A DNA stretch of 63,988 nucleotides, filler included, from Choristocarpus tenellus KU-1152 (lineage: Eukaryota > Protista > Phaeophyceae), in NCBI GenBank assembly GCA_964200185.2. It is 8 parts of 8 records of this genome, joined end to end, with 100 filler letters (N's around TTAATTAATTAA, not from the genome) between each part and the next. Parts side by side here need not be neighbours in the genome. Positions count along the whole stretch, not along the records: positions 47,360 to 56,192 come from CAXNAD020004280.1; 7 more parts are not named here. One strand, 5' to 3'. The notes beneath the pieces were generated by a model that worked only from the letters and a program-made list of their open reading frames with translations, ran no database searches and was not told the DNA's origin. Positions 47,215 to 56,949 of this stretch are shown here, one piece after another. Every line of letters begins with the position of its first letter. Within the stretch, counting starts at the first letter, position 1. The position numbers were made by a program, and so were the translations under genes.

Positions 47215-48306
47215 TGAGAGTAGTCAAGACTGTTTGTCCAGGTATTGGAAGGAGACCGTNNNNNNNNNNNNNNNNNNNNNNNNNNNNNNNNNNNNNNNNN
47301 NNNTTAATTAATTAANNNNNNNNNNNNNNNNNNNNNNNNNNNNNNNNNNNNNNNNNNNNCGCGCACCATTTTGGGTCAAACACATCCTCCATAGTATCCT
47401 CAATTTTGGTGAGAGGCTGTTATTTTCTGAAAAAAATAGTGTTGGTAAACAATATTTGAATCATCCGTTGAACTTCAGTTGCTGCCAAATCAATGTGTAA
47501 GTTGTGAGTCACGTTTGACCCCATAACGATAACAATGCTGGAAATGGTGGAGGATGACTATCTAAACAGCAATGTGAAAGACGGACCTGTCAGGTCTAGG
47601 AATAGATTTACAGGCTCACAAACTAATGCATGAAATCTTGTCTCTTTTGATTGTCAGCATCCAAATATGAACTGATACGAGTTTGAACATACATATTTCA
47701 ATGAAAGGTAACCCACTGCTTCCTAGAATGGGTTAAGGACTGAGCAATTTTGGCAAAATTAATAATGCTTCACTGAAAAAGTACAGACCCACAGCTAATT
47801 GAACCTCAGGAAGAAACAAACTAACAATCAACACACATCATATAGAAATACCGACAAAATTGATACTCTTTACCACGCCAGGCAGTTTGCATGTTCATTG
47901 TCAATCATTTGGCTGTGATCTGGCCAGCAGTCCAGTCATGGCAAAACTTTTGATGGCAGGTAGTCACAATCAGGTACTGGCGATCTTTTCTCTGGTCCTC
48001 AAATCACTCCTCTACTTAAAATGACCAACGAATGCATGACCAGTCTTGATCAGGTCTCTTTTATATCCTTTCCAATATTTCAATACTCCACCCTAACTCA
48101 AATTGAAATGTAAGCACAAAAAGCACTGTGCTGTTCTAGCTGCACTACCTTAAGTATAACAATTCCAGCGTGTCTCTGTAAGAATAAAACGTCGTTTTCT
48201 GAATTTAAATACAGAACACCAACCAAAACAATGAGAAATATCTTTAAATACTGTTCCTCCTCCCAAAAATCATGGCTTCAAGAGATGGAGAATATTATAT
48301 ATTCAC

Positions 48307-51300
48307 CTGCGCTGTTGCTTGCTACGGACAGGATCCCCGTGATATTCATTGTCCCAGAGTTGTAGATTCGAATGACTCCTCCGAACCCTCCTGTAAAAAA
48401 GCAACATTAAGAGGCAATGTTTGAAATATGCCAAATGATCAATACCATTATATGTATGGATGTAATCAATATTCTGCGAGAAGTATCATCTACTACAAGA
48501 GGTTTTCGAAAATATGAAAAAAATTACAATTTGCATTGTTTGTTCCATCATCACAAAGCAGATTGCGCACATGGGGTTGTTCACCTGCCAAGAAAAAACA
48601 TCATATAAAACGAGAGTAAACTCAGTGTACCATTGAAAATAAAAAAAGATTATTCCAAACCGAAGAATTTTACGTTTATTATGGTGGTCTCACTCTGATC
48701 CATATTATCTACATACTAGAGGGCAATGTATTTGATAATCCCTATTCTCTATAAGTTGTATTTTTTTTACGTAACATTGTTGCATTATACTCCTTAACAT
48801 GTTGACATGTAGAGTTGAAGAACAAAGGAGAACTAAGCAAAGAATCAATGTGTCTCCTCTTGATCATAGCAGTGCTCTCTTTCAGTACTACCATTGTTGA
48901 TAGGATCTTTCATGTTCGACTTTCAAAATTGTACAGTAAATTGTAGGAGGTTAGACCATGTTTTAGATGCCTCCTGACTGTTGAACATGCAAGACACGAG
49001 TTTCCATTGCTCACCAGTTCAAATTGATACAGCCCATTTCACCATTATTACAAAAAAAATTACCTACATAGTAGGGATCAACTCTATTTTTTTCCCCTGG
49101 ACAAACAAATTTAACCGGGGAAAAGGAACGAAACCAACGGACTTACCAGCACTGTTACCATAAAAGGTGGAAATACCTCCGAAGTTGAGAATTGATGAGA
49201 ACGAAGCATAGACCCCAAATCCATATCCATCTGGAATATTGTCGTGGTGTTGTAGGAGTGAATTCAAAGCGGAAATTTACATCCCAGGAAACAGACCTGA
49301 TACTGTTCATCTAGAGTGTAGAGAAGGGTAAGGAGTAGGCAAAGTTGCTCATGTAAATTAAATATTTAGACATCTGTCCTTGAATGGATCAAATTTGTCT
49401 CAAGTTCAAATTCATACAACCCATTTCACCATTATTACAAAAGAAATTATCTACGTAGGGATCAACTCAATTTTCATTTCACCATTCTTACAAAAGAACG
49501 ACGCATAGACCGCCCCTGAAGTTCACATCGCAATCAGTGATCATACACACAGCTCCTCCATTTGAAACTGGAAATATGTCAAGGTATTAAAACGGGAGAT
49601 TCCTAGATAAGTTTCTCACCTCTCAGAGAGAAGATATCATGAATCCTGCAAATAGATCATGGAAAACGGATGAAGTATAGGTGAAGAAATTCCTTACAGT
49701 GATTGAGTTAATGCACCCATTCGTAAATTAATTCTTGTCTGTACCAAGTTGATCAATTTTGAGGCAATATATCAAACTTGAAGCTACACAGTTCACAGGA
49801 CAAACATACTATATCTTGATACCGACAATACCAAATGCATATAATATTTTTTAGCAGTTCAAAGTGCAGCCATGAACTCTTCTTACGAGCTTCTTGTGAA
49901 ACTGAATTTTAGATAGTGCTGGAATCAGGCTAAAATGTGATCTGATCCAATTCCACATTTGTCAGCCTCAAACACATCTGCATATACACTTTCTTTTGAG
50001 AGAAGGATAGCTGTACCAGAGAGCATCAGTTGAAATGGGCGTAGGATCGCAATATGAAATTTAGGAATGTGTGAGAGCGTTTCAGTGTCAAGTATCAAGT
50101 TCAGAGTCAATACGAAAACAGCTCACCCACCATTGATCAATTCCATTCCCAACTGCACATAAGCATTGGTATATAAATTTCTCTAAGTTATTAAACACAA
50201 AACGCATGACCTTACCAGCACTGTTATCATGAAAGATGGAATCACCGTTGAAGTTAAGAATGCATGAATCTTGAGCATAAACAGCTCCTCCCACAACATC
50301 TGGAAATGTGCCAACGGGTTACAGGAGGGGATTCCAAGTTACTTTCATCTCAACAAATAGAGATCATACTATGGCAAAAATGTGGAGATGGGTAAACTAA
50401 TCCCTTGTGGGGATTATCTCCATGCACATGTGCTTGATGTGTCCAAACTTTTTCAATATTGAGGCAATAAATGAAACTGTAAGGTATACTAGTCACTGAA
50501 GAAGTAGCCTAAGACTTGAAACCGTACAAGGGAGATGCGTATATCGAGAACCTTTTTCAACGCATTGAATCACCACCATCAAAAATATATTGCCAAAATT
50601 ATGGCAACGCCATTTCTTTTAATTCATTCTGGAAACAAAGTGTAATTTATCTTATCCGACTTCAATATTGGTCAGTCCTGACCAGATATGCATGTACTCT
50701 CTCAAGCACGAGAGTAGAAAGGTAGCACTGGACGGTATCATTTGATTTGGCGGTGGTGTTGCAATGGTTGAGTTGTCTACGTCTAGCAGGTTTCTATAAA
50801 CCAATTCTGTAGTTCAAAGTAAACATAATCACAGTTCACCCAACACTTGTTCCATCCCATGCTCAACTGTACAAGGACACTGGCGTATCAACTTATATCA
50901 TGACTGAAAGACAGAATGCACGGATCTACCTGCACTGTTCTTATAGAAGGTGGAACTGCCTCCAACGTTGAGAGTGGAGAAGTCCAGAACATACGCAGCT
51001 CCTCCACAATCGTCTGGAATTGTGTCGAGGAATTGCAGAGATGGGATTCGAAGTTCAGTTTCACCTCATAGCAAATTGAACCCATACTATGGAACAAGAA
51101 TGTGGATATGGGTACGGAATAGATCCACATGTTCCTAATGAGGATTAGGTCTATTCACCGATTCTTGAATAGTTGAGACTTGAAACCGTCAAGTGGAAAT
51201 TCATATACCAGCAACCCTTCCATCACAGACCATGTCATCACTTGGAATTGCTGCTGAAGCAAAGTACAAATCAAATTATCAAACCATAATGTAAATCATT

Positions 51301-52106
51301 CTCAACCCAATGTCCATGTGTTCTTCAGAGAGGGTGAGTGAGCCAAAGTATACGAGGGGTAACCAGGGCTACATTTCTAGGACGCCAACTTATATGTGCA
51401 AATTTTGTACAATACATGTTGGATATTCTCTGAATTCTGTTGAAAGGTTTGAAACAGTAGAGAAATCAACACTCGAGTACATTTTGACACTTTATCCATA
51501 CAAATATTGGTGAATTGCACAAGATTGGAAAAACTGACATGAAATGAAAAACTGTCAAAACCTGGATACCTATCGTTTGCTTCGACTCAGACAAAGAGTA
51601 AGACTGGAGGGCGTCGTCCAAGTTGGGTGATATATTGCAAAATTCGAGTTCATCCATAGCTCCACAGAGACGTTGGCAATAGTAGTGGCAGTGGCAGGAT
51701 GTTAGAGGTAGAGTGTAGGTCGAACCAAGGGAAAATATGAGATATTTCTTCCTATGTAGAAGATTGTTATTGTCTCTAAATATATCCTGGAAGAAGTAGA
51801 CAGTACATCGCACTATGGAAGGTTTAGTACGATCAGAAAAGACCATGCAGAATACTCACTGCCAATGAGCAATAATGTCGTAAATTCTCTAATCCCTCAT
51901 TCTAAGATTAAATGAAAAGAGGACAACAAATTTCTATACATGAAATGCAAAGGCTCTAGGAGATTCTTCATAAAAGCAAAACAGTTATCTCTGATTTGGA
52001 GCCACATCGTCCTTGCACTCACGAGCAACGTTGCCAACAAAGATCATATTGCCATCAGAGGAGATGGCCCAATTGTCCTGTCCATGTATAGCTCCTCCAT
52101 CATCAT
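48307..52106 (-). CDS. Pmp/adhesin-like parallel beta-helix repeat gene fragment: 84-bp exons at 52106-52023, 51013-50930, 50299-50216, 49230-49147, 48390-48307
   Basis: Each exon is exactly 84 nt, bounded by CAG and GT, phase 1-1. Translations: DDDGGAIHGQDNWAISSDGNMIFVGNVA, DDCGGAAYVLDFSTLNVGGSSTFYKNSA, DVVGGAVYAQDSCILNFNGDSIFHDNSA, DGYGFGVYASFSSILNFGGISTFYGNSA, GGFGGVIRIYNSGTMNITGILSVASNSA (first residue spans the junction). GGA[IV] and FxxN are the Chlamydia-Pmp-type repeat motifs. Confidence 0.82.
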
Positions 52107-52528
52107 CTGCAATTATGTGCAACCGTTTTCAGTTTTAAATTGGACTGTTGCCCTCATAAATCATCGTTTAGGATATATTCACATGAAGACACGAGTTTAT
52201 CAATTTTGAGGCAAGGAATTAATTTCGTGCTATTCAGGGCACTCCAGAAACAGCATGAGACTTGAAAGGTTCAAGGGGATAGGTATGTATCAAAACCTCT
52301 TTCAACACTCTAAATTGCAGCATTACAAAAATAATTCGAAAGTTCTATTTATGTCATTGCTTTCAATTGGTGCTGAAAGAAATGTGAACTCATTCAAGAT
52401 GAATATGAACGATCACGATCTAACCTGTATTGATTTTTTCAAGAGATCTATTAAGTAGATCTGGAGGGTAACAAACAAGGTAGGTGTGGAGTTACAATGG
52501 TGGAGATATGGGATTTAAGTAGAACAGC

Positions 52529-52702
52529 GACGCAAAGTATCTGGGGGGGGGGGTCTACACCAGAGTGTCCATTTGGACCAAAACCAGGAAAAGTGCACTT
52601 TTATTATCCATCCAACGTATGGAACCAAATCAACCAAAAATCGCGACATGAAAAAATTGGCCCCAAATGGACAGCTGCCACCCCCCCCAGATACGTTAAG
52701 CC
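52529..52702 (-). mobile_element. MITE family B copy
   Basis: GACGCAAAGTATCTGGGGGG ... CCCCCCAGATACGTTAAGCC; interior is the reverse complement of the 41615 and 55980 copies. Confidence 0.85.
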
Positions 52703-53049
52703 AGTGGCAAGCATTTTTGTAATTTAGAGACATTTTCAGTATACCTTGCTGAGCTGTACAAAGACATTGGCACTAGTAGCTGTAGTAGTAGAAAGAAAGA
52801 GGTAGTGTGTCATTCAAAATGACAGAAATGTGGTATCTCATGTTGTTCAGCAGATAGTAACTATCTGCGCACATCTATGTTTGGTGTTAGTAGACTAGTG
52901 AATCTATGTACAGAAAATATACTACGATTGTGATCACGATCTTCTATGCTGAAATGAGTATCCTTTGTGTGGAACAGCATCAAGCTTTCACTCACTTGCA
53001 ACATTTCTTGAAAACTTGGCACTGCCTTCGGAGAAAATTGTCGAAAATA

Positions 53050-55720
53050 TATATGCCGCTATAGCTCCTCCGTCGATCTCTGGGTTTGACGCGCTGAGAC
53101 TGATCCTTCCCTCACTAACATCCCTTCATATGGGAGGTGTCTGCCCAGTCATACCTCTCTCCAACCCTCCCCCACCCCTCAAAGGCCTGGGTTTGACGAA
53201 GAAAGGGGGGAGCAAGGGAGGCTTGCCCCAAGAGGTCAGGGAACAAGGTGCCAAAGACTTGAATGGGAGGTCACAGTACCATGGAAGTGATGGTGCAGGG
53301 CCTCAGGGGGCGCAAGGATCCAGGGACAGGATGCACACACACACACACACACCTTAATGGAGGCCCAGGTCACCTACCTCCACATATGCTACTATTGGGG
53401 GTGTGCTTTCCCCCAGCATTGCAGCAGCCCTAGATAAATGCTGAAGGATGACCTTGGATAGTTCAATTTAGATACAGTGAAGGACATCCAAAGTTTGCTC
53501 TGCATGGCCTCACGTGAATACCATCTCATGCCTGTGAAATCCTCCTACATGAGGTCAGTGCCTACTCTGGGAGTGGAAATGATATCCCCATGACCTGCTA
53601 GAATATCAAAACTCCTGGCAGTCATCCCAAGTCTTTTTCTGTCCAATTTTGACAATCATTTCTGCAGCAGGGTGCTTCACTAGGGTGGTCAATGTGGACA
53701 TTTGAGAATGACCATGTGGTTGGCTCCTTCAGCAAGTACAAAGGGCGATACGACACCTGGAGTCCAGAGTAGAGGACCGAATATCCAGCCAGCAGCAGGG
53801 AGCTGCACCTGGTCGTCATCTTGAGGGTATATTCAAGGCAGTGAGTGTCTTTATGACTCGCCCTGCTCGCCTGGAAATGAGGCACGCTGGAGCAACTCTT
53901 TCCTTACGATGAAGGACGGGTGAAAATCTTACAGCTCAGGCCAGGATCACCTCAAGGTGACCCATGAGGGCCCCTCCTATTCTGTCTCGCCACCTGAAAG
54001 GTACTGAAGAACCTTCAGACAGGTTTTGGCCCCCACGGGATCTCATGCGGCAGGTTCTTGAATGGCTTGTCCCTCTTCATCTCTAGGATTAATGCAACAA
54101 CCCTCGGAGCGTTGCAATAGCTCCGGGTGAATCTGCGAGGGGTGGATGTTTCTCTGAAATCAATGTGGAAAAGAAATGTACACATCAGGGTTACCACCTT
54201 TATAATCAGAGCTTGATCTTCATGGGAACAGCGGACGCCAACCTTGCCCCAGGCATTAATGGTTTTGTCATTATAGTTGCACTTATAGGCATGGAGAATT
54301 CTATCCGAGTCCATGTGGGCAGGAGTATTTAGAGCCCTAGGCTAATGAATCGAGCCACACGCCTCAGAGCAATGGAGGATAACCAAGTGGAATAGCCCTT
54401 CAATGCCTAGGCCCTTTCTCCCCCGTCTGGTAGAGGTTACCCAACTAAAATTGATAATTCCATCGTGCAGCAGTGATAAAGAAGCTGATGTTCCCAAGAA
54501 TTGTTTATGTAAATTACTCAATTAGATCCTTATTGGGTAAAACAGGTTGTAGATGAAGTACGGAAGGAGGGAGGAGTGAACATCCAAGTCCAAAGGGGGG
54601 GGTTCCTTGCCACCAAACCATTCCTATTCTTTGGATCAATGATCACTAATCACAGATTGCTTGCTACAATGTTTCTTATTCCTGAACTCTTCCATATTCT
54701 AGTTTTTAAACCCAACCATATCTTCTATTCATCAGAACACAAACATGTTCTCTTCATCCTTAGATTGCTTCTTACGGAGTCTTCTTTTACACGTGAATAA
54801 AAATGATATTAATTATATTCTTGACAAGAAGGCCGGCATCACTTCTTTCTGGTCACTTGAGAGGATTTTGGAGGTGGCAAAATCAAGCCAACATAATTTC
54901 TTGAGGGAGGCATCGTCCAACCACTGCCCAGTGACCAGATGCAGAAGACAGGGTATGAATCATAGGCATGCACAAACATAGCCTAACGAGTGAAGGTATC
55001 TTCGAGGTTAGAGCCGCGTCCGTTTGGGGACCAAAATCCAATGTTATGATTTTGATGTAATTTTGGCCATCGTGATTTTTGGGAAGTGTCAATATCCTTA
55101 TCCCGGACACACCTTTTCATAACGTATACATTTTACCTACTCCGAAACATTTCGGAGTAGGAAAATGTAATAAAAAGCCCGTGGGAAGCCAAGCCATAAA
55201 CGGACAAACAGGGCAAAATTCGTACCCTCTAAGATACTTTCACTTTAAAGCATGCCTATGGTTGGGCAACTGGGAGGGATCTGCAGGCAGGAAGGGTATC
55301 CCCTGCACCATGGAGGATAAATAGGAGTCCTTTCACTATTGACTGGAGTTTCCTCATAGGTGTAGCATACCTTGCTGGGGCACTGTCCAACACAGCCACA
55401 GCTCCCTACAAGAGGTCTCCTTCTCGATGTGGCCTTTGGAAACGCCCAAGTGGATACAGCCATATAAAAGACTCATCTACAAACTACAGCATTGTTGCTG
55501 CGGCTAAGGCCCAGAAGGTTAACCGCTACCAGGGATCGTTATTCTTGTAGTTTGAACATCACGGTGCTTTGAGCGTCTTGATGCTCAAGCAGTGCAACTC
55601 CTGGATGGGCTGGCAACTCATTCAGTGGTTGGTAGTGGGGCTGGGTATTTTAGTATATAGGGGGTGGTGAAGGCATGCCTACGACAGACTTTCAAGGCGC
55701 TTTTGATGAATCCCAAGGTA
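53050..55720 (+). mobile_element. Degenerate non-LTR retrotransposon (RT plus C-terminal restriction-like endonuclease remnants)
   Basis: Frame-broken remnants: ..QQGASLG.. (QGxPLG-like, about 53665) and GLLLDVAFGNAQ..IVAAAKAQKVNRYQGS..LLDGLATH (55410-55625), resembling the LLDVT..AA..K..KY pattern of RLE-bearing LINEs. Boundaries approximate. Confidence 0.45.
54988..55245 (+). mobile_element. MITE family A copy (flanks TAAC / TAAA)
   Basis: GAGTGAAGGTATCTTCGAGG ... TACCCTCTAAGATACTTTCACTT. Confidence 0.9.
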
Positions 55721-55979
55721 TAGACAATGGGTGGGTAAGCAAGGTAGTGCTTGATCGACCTGTTGGAGTCTTCCCTTGATTCTAGACTACCTTCGTATTG
55801 CCAGTCTAGGAGCAGCTTCATCAGTGCACATGTGCTATCACATGTTTCTCAGGGTTAATTAAGACAACATGCATTTACCTGTACATAGATTATTAGCAGT
55901 GTGGATAGACTAGGTTTCTTGTTTCAAATATGCTGCAACTACTGCAGTTGGGTGTAATGTTAAATCTTTATTGTAACCA

Positions 55980-56151
55980 GGCTTAAAGTATCTGGGGGGA
56001 GTAGCGTCCGTTTGGGGTCAATTTTTTCATGTCGCAATCTTTGGATGATTTGGTTGCATACGTTGGATGGATAATGTAAATACTCTTTTCCTGTGTTTGG
56101 TCCAAATGGACACCCTGGTGTCGACCCCCCCCCTCCCAGATACTTTGGGTC
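55980..56151 (+). mobile_element. MITE family B copy, TSD ACCA
   Basis: ACCA|GGCTTAAAGTATCTGGGGGG ... CCCAGATACTTTGGGTC|ACCA. Confidence 0.9.
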
Positions 56152-56949
56152 ACCAGTACAGACTCTTTTGTATTCCCGGTATTAGATCGGAANNNNNNNN
56201 NNNNNNNNNNNNNNNNNNNNNNNNNNNNNNNNNNNNTTAATTAATTAANNNNNNNNNNNNNNNNNNNNNNNNNNNNNNNNNNNNNNNNNNNNGGGAACGT
56301 TGCCCTTGATAACAGTTTGTAGGGTGTCAGATGTCCTTCTCTTCTTGATATTCCACTCAGTGCTTAGCTCAAAGCTCGACTCAAAGTTTCGTTCAAGATA
56401 AAAAGTAAGGACTGGAGGTAAGAGGGGTGATGGCTTGACCAAAAGCCCTCTTATTATTTTCATCATCCACCCAATTTCTTTGGTCTTCTATGCAACTGCT
56501 CTACATGTACTCCAATCATAAACCTGTATTCTGCAACTTCTTAGGGACTTTGACAAATGTTACGTATGCATTCCGAATCTTACTCTGTATCTTTTATGAC
56601 ATCACCATTTATTCTGTAAGGCTACCTATGTGTCACTAATACCGTGCATTGTTCGCACTTGTTAGAACGCGAGAAATAATACTCGCATTATACATCTGTC
56701 ACAAACGTTGGTATTTGCTAAAACACGGGAAGAAATGCTCGCGCTATTCGCGTGTAACAAATGCTCGCACTTAGTTGGAACACAAGAAGAAATGCTTGTG
56801 CTATTCGCCTGTAATAGCTGATGATGCTCGTACAAGCCTCCCAGGATACTCCAACAATCAATAGATCCAACAAGCTTAAAGAGCTCAGAGTCATTTGCCA
56901 CTTTAGTAATTTCACCTAGTCGATCCACAGACAATTCATAGGCAGGGTA

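Follow-up and report, generated by a model that had tools for sequence, protein, structure and literature searches.

An array of symmetric 84-nucleotide exons, each encoding one predicted Pmp-type beta-helix rung, in the brown alga Choristocarpus tenellus

The window considered here is a stretch of 63,988 nucleotides (nt), filler included, assembled from eight parts of the genome of Choristocarpus tenellus KU-1152 (GCA_964200185.2), and the analysis was confined to one of these parts, the piece at positions 47360-56192 (CAXNAD020004280.1). On its minus strand this piece carries an array of six exons of exactly 84 nt, each encoding one repeat of 28 amino acids (aa), and we conclude that it is probably an internal segment of a eukaryotic Pmp-type beta-helix gene that grew long ago through the tandem duplication of a module consisting of one rung plus one intron. 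An earlier note on this DNA had described five phase 1-1 exons of this length, each with a single 28-aa GGA..FxxN repeat; all five were found, along with a sixth, exon A, outside the range that it covered.

A three-frame read of the minus strand revealed seven short open stretches with a GGA...F..N motif, and a search for AG...GT pairs placed exons of exactly 84 nt, preceded by AG and followed by GT, at six of the seven. These are exons A (52996-53079), B (52023-52106), C (50930-51013), D (50216-50299), F (49147-49230) and G (48307-48390), all on the minus strand, all in phase 1-1 and all recognised by a hidden Markov model (HMM) of the array's own repeats. Exon A, which encodes the single 28-aa repeat EIDGGAIAAY...FSRNVA in an open frame, scores 42.9 bits against this model, the flanks of exon C are homologous to those of exon D, and exon G is the most divergent copy. 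In every exon the first two bases close a codon and the last base opens the next one, which puts both neighbouring introns in phase 1; as T is never the last base of an exon, the codon formed wherever two exons are joined is a sense codon and not a stop. The donors read GTGAGT, GTGAGT, GTAGAT, GTAAGG, GTAAGT and GTGAAT, that of exon C (GTAGAT) being weak, while five of the six acceptors conform to (T/A)(T/A)(C/G)CAG and that of exon A reads CCCAG. Intron lengths are 889, 1009, 630, 985 and 756 nt, and the copies are spaced 714-1093 nt apart from start to start. Six open, indel-free copies of 84 nt amid indel-rich introns of 630-1009 nt are far beyond chance. A six-frame search with the array HMM found no exon copies on the plus strand or elsewhere in the piece.

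Within the 28-residue peptides G4, G19, N26 and A28 are invariant and G5 and F23 nearly so, the combination of G4-G5-A6-[IVA]7 with F23-x-x-N26 is present in all six (with small departures in F and G), hydrophobic residues occupy alternate positions, and the remaining positions vary. The alternation of GGA(I/V) and FxxN with a period of about 28 residues is a likeness to the Chlamydia-type Pmp repeats (PF02415, TIGR01376). Single exons had no Pfam match, and their best NCBIfam match was TIGR01376 POMP_repeat at 11.7 bits (exon B; cut-off 15); the Chlam_PMP and POMP models extend across the exon boundary and add up their scores over several repeats, and single exons are too short for family models. 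A word-index protein search with the alignment of open reading frames (ORFs) gave no match, a likely outcome given its length window. The six exon peptides were next combined into a profile of 31 columns, and a search of 1.84 billion representative proteins with it retrieved 171 at E<=1e-3, of which the best reached 7.7e-37 and was matched in 13 stretches. All of the eight best relatives lie above the Pfam PF02415 Chlam_PMP cut-off (22.9-194 bits versus 20.6), several of them match Beta_helix too, and the Chlam_PMP cut-off is passed by 25 of 30 aligned segments of relatives. Comparison of the exon profile with the relatives' alignment by hhalign gave a probability of 96.6% (E 5.4e-10), in register with one repeat of relative P0007 (residues 265-290), and exon D alone is up to 64-68% identical to single repeats of Pmp-like proteins in the database.

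An AlphaFold model of P0007 (328 residues) reached a predicted local distance difference test value of 90.6 and a predicted template modelling score of 0.89; in it every repeat, about 27 residues long, forms three to four short strands. A sequence search of the PDB with P0007 returned no meaningful match; Foldseek matches of the model to PDB entries at E<=0.001 are known right-handed beta-helix proteins and include polysaccharide lyases (RbmB, PL6), alginate epimerases and the adhesin PfbA. These data support the assignment of the array repeats to Pmp-type right-handed beta-helix rungs, the fold being predicted by proxy from P0007, and since the exon profile aligns to one repeat of a relative modelled as a beta-helix, one exon is predicted to correspond to one rung, the intron interrupting the turn that leads from N-S-A to the following G-G-A. 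The earlier suggestion of Pmp-type beta-helix rungs, one per symmetric exon, is supported by the profile matches, the Chlam_PMP scores and the model of the relative. Bacterial Pmp proteins are autotransporters, whereas no autotransporter domain was found in the ORFs of the piece, which ends before the C-terminus of the array gene, or in the eight best eukaryotic relatives, and the array gene has introns of spliceosomal type.

The introns between these exons are themselves related. The motif TTGAGGCAA occurs exactly at 49759, 50459 and 52206, and AGACTTGAA at 50512, 51176 and 52258 and, upstream of exon A, a fourth time at 53255; the number of chance matches expected is about 0.1 per motif, the motifs having been picked after they were seen. 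In a self-BLAST, 50098-50394 (around exon D, minus strand) matched 50811-51114 (around exon C) over 305 nt at 69.5% identity, and this match extends about 100 nt into the introns on both sides, with flank z-scores of 10.4 and 8.8. A second match links 49137-49338 with 50920-51122 (203 nt, 66.5%), and a third joins the intron block upstream of exon D (50449-50639, minus strand), which includes TTGAGGCAA and AGACTTGAA, to 52196-52382 upstream of exon B (194 nt, 68.6%); shorter copies of this block lie at 49740-49828, 51176-51219 and 53235-53263. Further matches connect 49740-49828 with 50440-50529 (90 nt, 70.0%) and 51658-51716 with 52752-52810 (59 nt, 74.6%). Some of the matches run from exon into intron and some are wholly intronic, and an alignment of five modules placed the common blocks mostly in the 3' third of the introns, 100-215 nt before the next exon. 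As blocks in this position are common to the modules, the copied unit comprises exon plus intron and measures 0.7-1.1 kilobases (kb). The intron co-duplication proposed earlier is accordingly present, both in the motifs named then and in the similarity between introns seen by self-comparison, and so is a unit of the size then given.

The relatives of the array share its repeats and differ in gene structure. Among the relatives only one is named, XP_065895934.1 from the sponge Dysidea avara, and it is uncharacterised; a further search put the family at 1659 proteins or more at E<=1e-10, often with several members per contig. In the members that we examined, a beta-helix cap at the N-terminus accompanies a large number of Pmp repeats; P0005 contains, in addition, a Cys-rich region and several predicted membrane helices. 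In P0001 (594 aa in 1785 nt) and P0002 (1897 aa in 5694 nt) no intron interrupts the coding sequence of the repeats, residues 1-1183 of P0006 fall in one tblastn segment, and short fragments of relatives hold two to five repeats within one ORF; the repeat region is free of introns in every relative whose DNA or ORF was inspected. With the exon D ORF as query, metagenome contigs yielded no relative, and of two ORFs of the piece that were looked up with a view to extending the contig, neither has a record. Whereas the eukaryotic Pmp-like relatives examined carry their repeats in one uninterrupted frame, in the array each repeat has its own exon, and the array repeats differ from one another much more than do those of, for example, P0001. 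The layout of one rung per exon is unusual for the family as sampled.

Intronless relatives on the one hand and sequence blocks common to the introns on the other would be expected if an introner, an intron-generating mobile element, had inserted separately into each repeat of an intronless gene. However, in contigs from two DNA runs (X1 and X2, of one study; the contigs are short), depth over the common intron blocks is about 45-80, like that of the exons, with no sign of a dispersed high-copy family; pairs of modules that are more alike in their exons are also more alike in their introns; and all introns interrupt the identical codon position. We therefore consider the introner hypothesis extremely improbable, and reject it on the single-copy-like depth of the common blocks. 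Because all introns are homologous and stand at the same codon position, a single copied intron is the simplest history.

The duplication of rung-plus-intron modules lies far back. Nucleotide identity between exon copies is 0.40-0.67, with no near-identical pair; the proportion of synonymous differences (pS) is 0.41-1.0, near saturation, and that of nonsynonymous differences (pN) 0.30-0.52, the pooled values being 0.67 and 0.44, respectively. Judged by this divergence the array copies are old. C, D and F are closest to one another (z-scores of 6-10 for the 5' flanks), followed by B and then A, with G as the outlier; similarity thus follows position along the array, which fits plain tandem duplication. 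The exact length, frames and splice sites kept in six diverged copies, while the introns vary by hundreds of bases, point to long purifying selection on the scaffold. Values of pN/pS at 0.45-1.15 were also considered as a sign of positive selection at the variable sites, but with synonymous sites near saturation and 27 codons per exon no claim of this kind is made.

The seventh copy, E (minus strand, 49492-49567), is broken. It has a good acceptor at 49567/8 and an intact run of 19 codons (49511-49567), beyond which it continues as a patchwork of sequence taken from the F module, and it contains a TAA in frame; the sole strong donor, GTAAGA, lies at 76 nt, and its use would shift the frame. 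The patchwork consists of 17 nt that agree with exon F's 5' part at 16 positions, an incomplete copy (24 nt) of the block in the F-G intron, and a 72-nt full copy of the same block at 89-96% identity. The last two make up a recent duplicate (89-96%) of the F-G intron block at 49016-49090, with the extra 24-nt partial copy, that occupies 49403-49498 on the minus strand and adjoins the broken exon. The patch that broke E is the only young event visible in the array and shows that local rearrangement continues, here destructively. One X1 DNA contig joins 49474 back to 49141, and may represent a different arrangement of the E/F region.

A broken copy is one of several features that would suit a decaying relic, that is, the no-longer-expressed remnant of a once functional gene that died recently. 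The introns contain miniature inverted-repeat transposable elements (MITEs) and a further repeated element, upstream there is a GC-rich stretch with many transposons, the piece holds no start, end or other domain of the gene, and the exon C donor is weak. Yet six copies only 40-67% identical keep exact length, frames, AG/GT bounds and scaffold residues amid indel-filled introns, and because such conservation of the exons requires long purifying selection, this explanation is disfavoured and we regard it as unlikely.

The expansion of repeat-protein genes through tandem duplication of symmetric 1-1 exons is well known from Patthy's exon-shuffling rules. The array resembles this classical process in its equal-length 1-1 exons, in the introns duplicated along with them and in the gradient of similarity between neighbours; nothing essential differs, and the only new feature is the kind of repeat, a Pmp-type beta-helix rung. 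Mutually exclusive exon arrays of the Dscam exon 6 type rely on docking and selector RNA pairing, and their variants replace one another, whereas the rungs of the array, all stacked, give a sensible protein. Tandem homologous exons of equal length, each with a conserved upstream intron element, are common to both; the array differs in that no complementary docking sequence or conserved RNA pairing was found within the piece.

A closer precedent, to which the earlier note had pointed, is real and was accurately cited: in brown-algal ROCO genes the leucine-rich repeats (LRRs) are encoded by single 72-nt exons, with inactivated and opposite-strand copies in introns (PMC3341825), and at these brown-algal loci intact as well as inactivated exon copies occur on the non-coding strand, while interruptions in expressed sequence tags suggest variable use (PMC3341825). 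With the ROCO-LRR and NB-ARC-tetratricopeptide repeat (TPR) genes the array shares one exon of fixed length per repeat (72 nt there, 84 nt here) with frame-preserving bounds, and an inactivated copy within an intron (here E, on the coding strand). It differs in lacking opposite-strand copies and very recent copies (the maximum nucleotide identity between exons is 0.67), and in that the repeat fold is an LRR solenoid or TPR there and a beta-helix here, with no signalling domain in view.

By analogy with such systems, the exons could be in present use as cassettes, with alternative splicing (varying or exclusive inclusion) or frequent recombination producing many beta-helix isoforms. All exons are 84 nt and phase 1-1 with a sense codon at every join, conservation is higher in short blocks lying 100-215 nt before exons A-E than in the remaining intron, one inactivated exon lies inside an intron as in the brown-algal ROCO loci, and there are contigs that carry additional, divergent versions of the regions of exons B and C, as well as one with the rearranged join of 49474 to 49141, all of which agrees with this idea. 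On the other side, no pair of exons exceeds 67% nucleotide identity and pS is at least 0.41, no copies lie on the other strand, similarity follows array position, and the intron blocks have neither a consensus RNA structure in the block alignment nor a complementary partner on either strand within the piece. Cassette use at present is quite unlikely on this evidence, and we think it highly unlikely that the locus is a working cassette system in which subsets or orders of one-rung exons, chosen by alternative splicing or by somatic or germline recombination with the intron blocks as control elements, give different surface beta-helices; if it were, it would be the beta-helix counterpart of the LRR cassette systems. 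The dynamic shuffling and diversification system envisaged in the earlier note is not supported, given the old copies, similarity graded by distance, the lack of opposite-strand or near-identical exons, and intron blocks with no shared RNA structure or complementary docking partner in the piece.

The history that we favour, old tandem duplication of a rung-plus-intron module, would have begun with an ancestral exon-plus-intron unit that was copied in tandem, most likely through unequal crossing-over, to at least seven units, which then diverged over a long time. Exon length, frame and splice sites would have been retained by selection, as would the core residues G-G-A, G, F and N-x-A, while other positions drifted, and a later local rearrangement would have destroyed unit E as transposons settled in the introns. 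Because beta-helix rungs stack and 1-1 exons keep the frame, gain or loss of units is tolerated, and this is the route of diversification seen in the array, one that acts on an evolutionary time scale. The six exons would be spliced in order into one messenger RNA, and the product is presumably extracellular or exposed at the cell surface.

Several observations weigh against this history. The piece yielded neither a signal peptide nor a start, a stop or any further domain, and the ends of the gene lie outside it; the exon/intron structure has no parallel among the relatives examined, whose repeat regions are intronless; no single exon reaches the curated cut-off of any Pfam or NCBIfam family alone; and one broken copy in transposon-rich surroundings may reflect decay of the array.

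What the array represents is ordinary tandem exon duplication in a repeat protein, unseen before among the family relatives sampled here. If the exons are spliced as we infer, the locus offers a clean example of a solenoid protein lengthening turn by turn via symmetric exons, in a repeat family, the Pmp-type beta-helix, that is usually discussed in bacteria only and that here belongs to a very large uncharacterised eukaryotic group. It also allows two growth routes to be compared for one fold, namely in-frame repeat expansion and duplication of exon modules. The locus is a candidate in which to look for cassette use, and knowledge of exon duplication is unchanged by the present findings.

X1 and X2 contigs that are 70-95% identical to parts of the array (48450-49044, 50917-50946 and 52043-52077) occur at a depth at or above that of the reference allele, one of them, for example, with ten differences within exon B. 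Divergent contigs at such depth imply further array copies in the genome or in the other haplotype; paralogy, a divergent haplotype or a rearranged allele could each account for them, and the contigs do not discriminate among these.

Intron A-B contains a high-copy MITE of about 174 nt (52529-52702) with the terminal inverted repeats AAAGTATCTGGGGGG...CCCCCCAGATAC, which stands outside the coding design of the gene. Its contig depth of about 770,000, against about 25 for single-copy sequence, corresponds to some 10,000 copies or more, and the insertion is polymorphic, since empty-site contigs join 52524 to 52702 in both runs. A second copy, inverted relative to the first and 86% identical to it, lies 3.3 kb away at 55980-56151, so that the two bracket exon A and a GC-rich block. 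That block (53100-54400, upstream of exon A) has 49-52% G+C against about 38% regionally, holds ORFs of 87-130 aa without a Pfam match and, at 53334-53352, a (CA)9.5 run, and is possibly a degraded mobile element; Rfam and tandem-repeat scans of the piece returned nothing besides the (CA)n run. In intron B-C, contig depth rises to 170-700 over 51206-51706, against about 50 nearby, which indicates a moderately repeated element, and this part overlaps a 126-aa ORF without a Pfam match.

On the minus strand at 54864-54959, a weak HMM match (1.6 bits) to the motif F-x-P-x-x-L-L-x-x-G-Q-W, conserved in the C-terminal membrane region of several long relatives, was rejected as not significant, as 1 of 30 shuffles reaches 2.3 bits; were it genuine, it would represent part of a neighbouring member of the family. 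A second MITE-like element occupies about 54990-55250, with the terminal inverted repeats GTGAAGGTATCTTCGAGG ... CCTCTAAGATACTTTCAC and the motif GCGTCCGTTTGGGG in common with the other MITE, and contains an internal 44-nt palindrome (55127-55169) that is 91% complementary.

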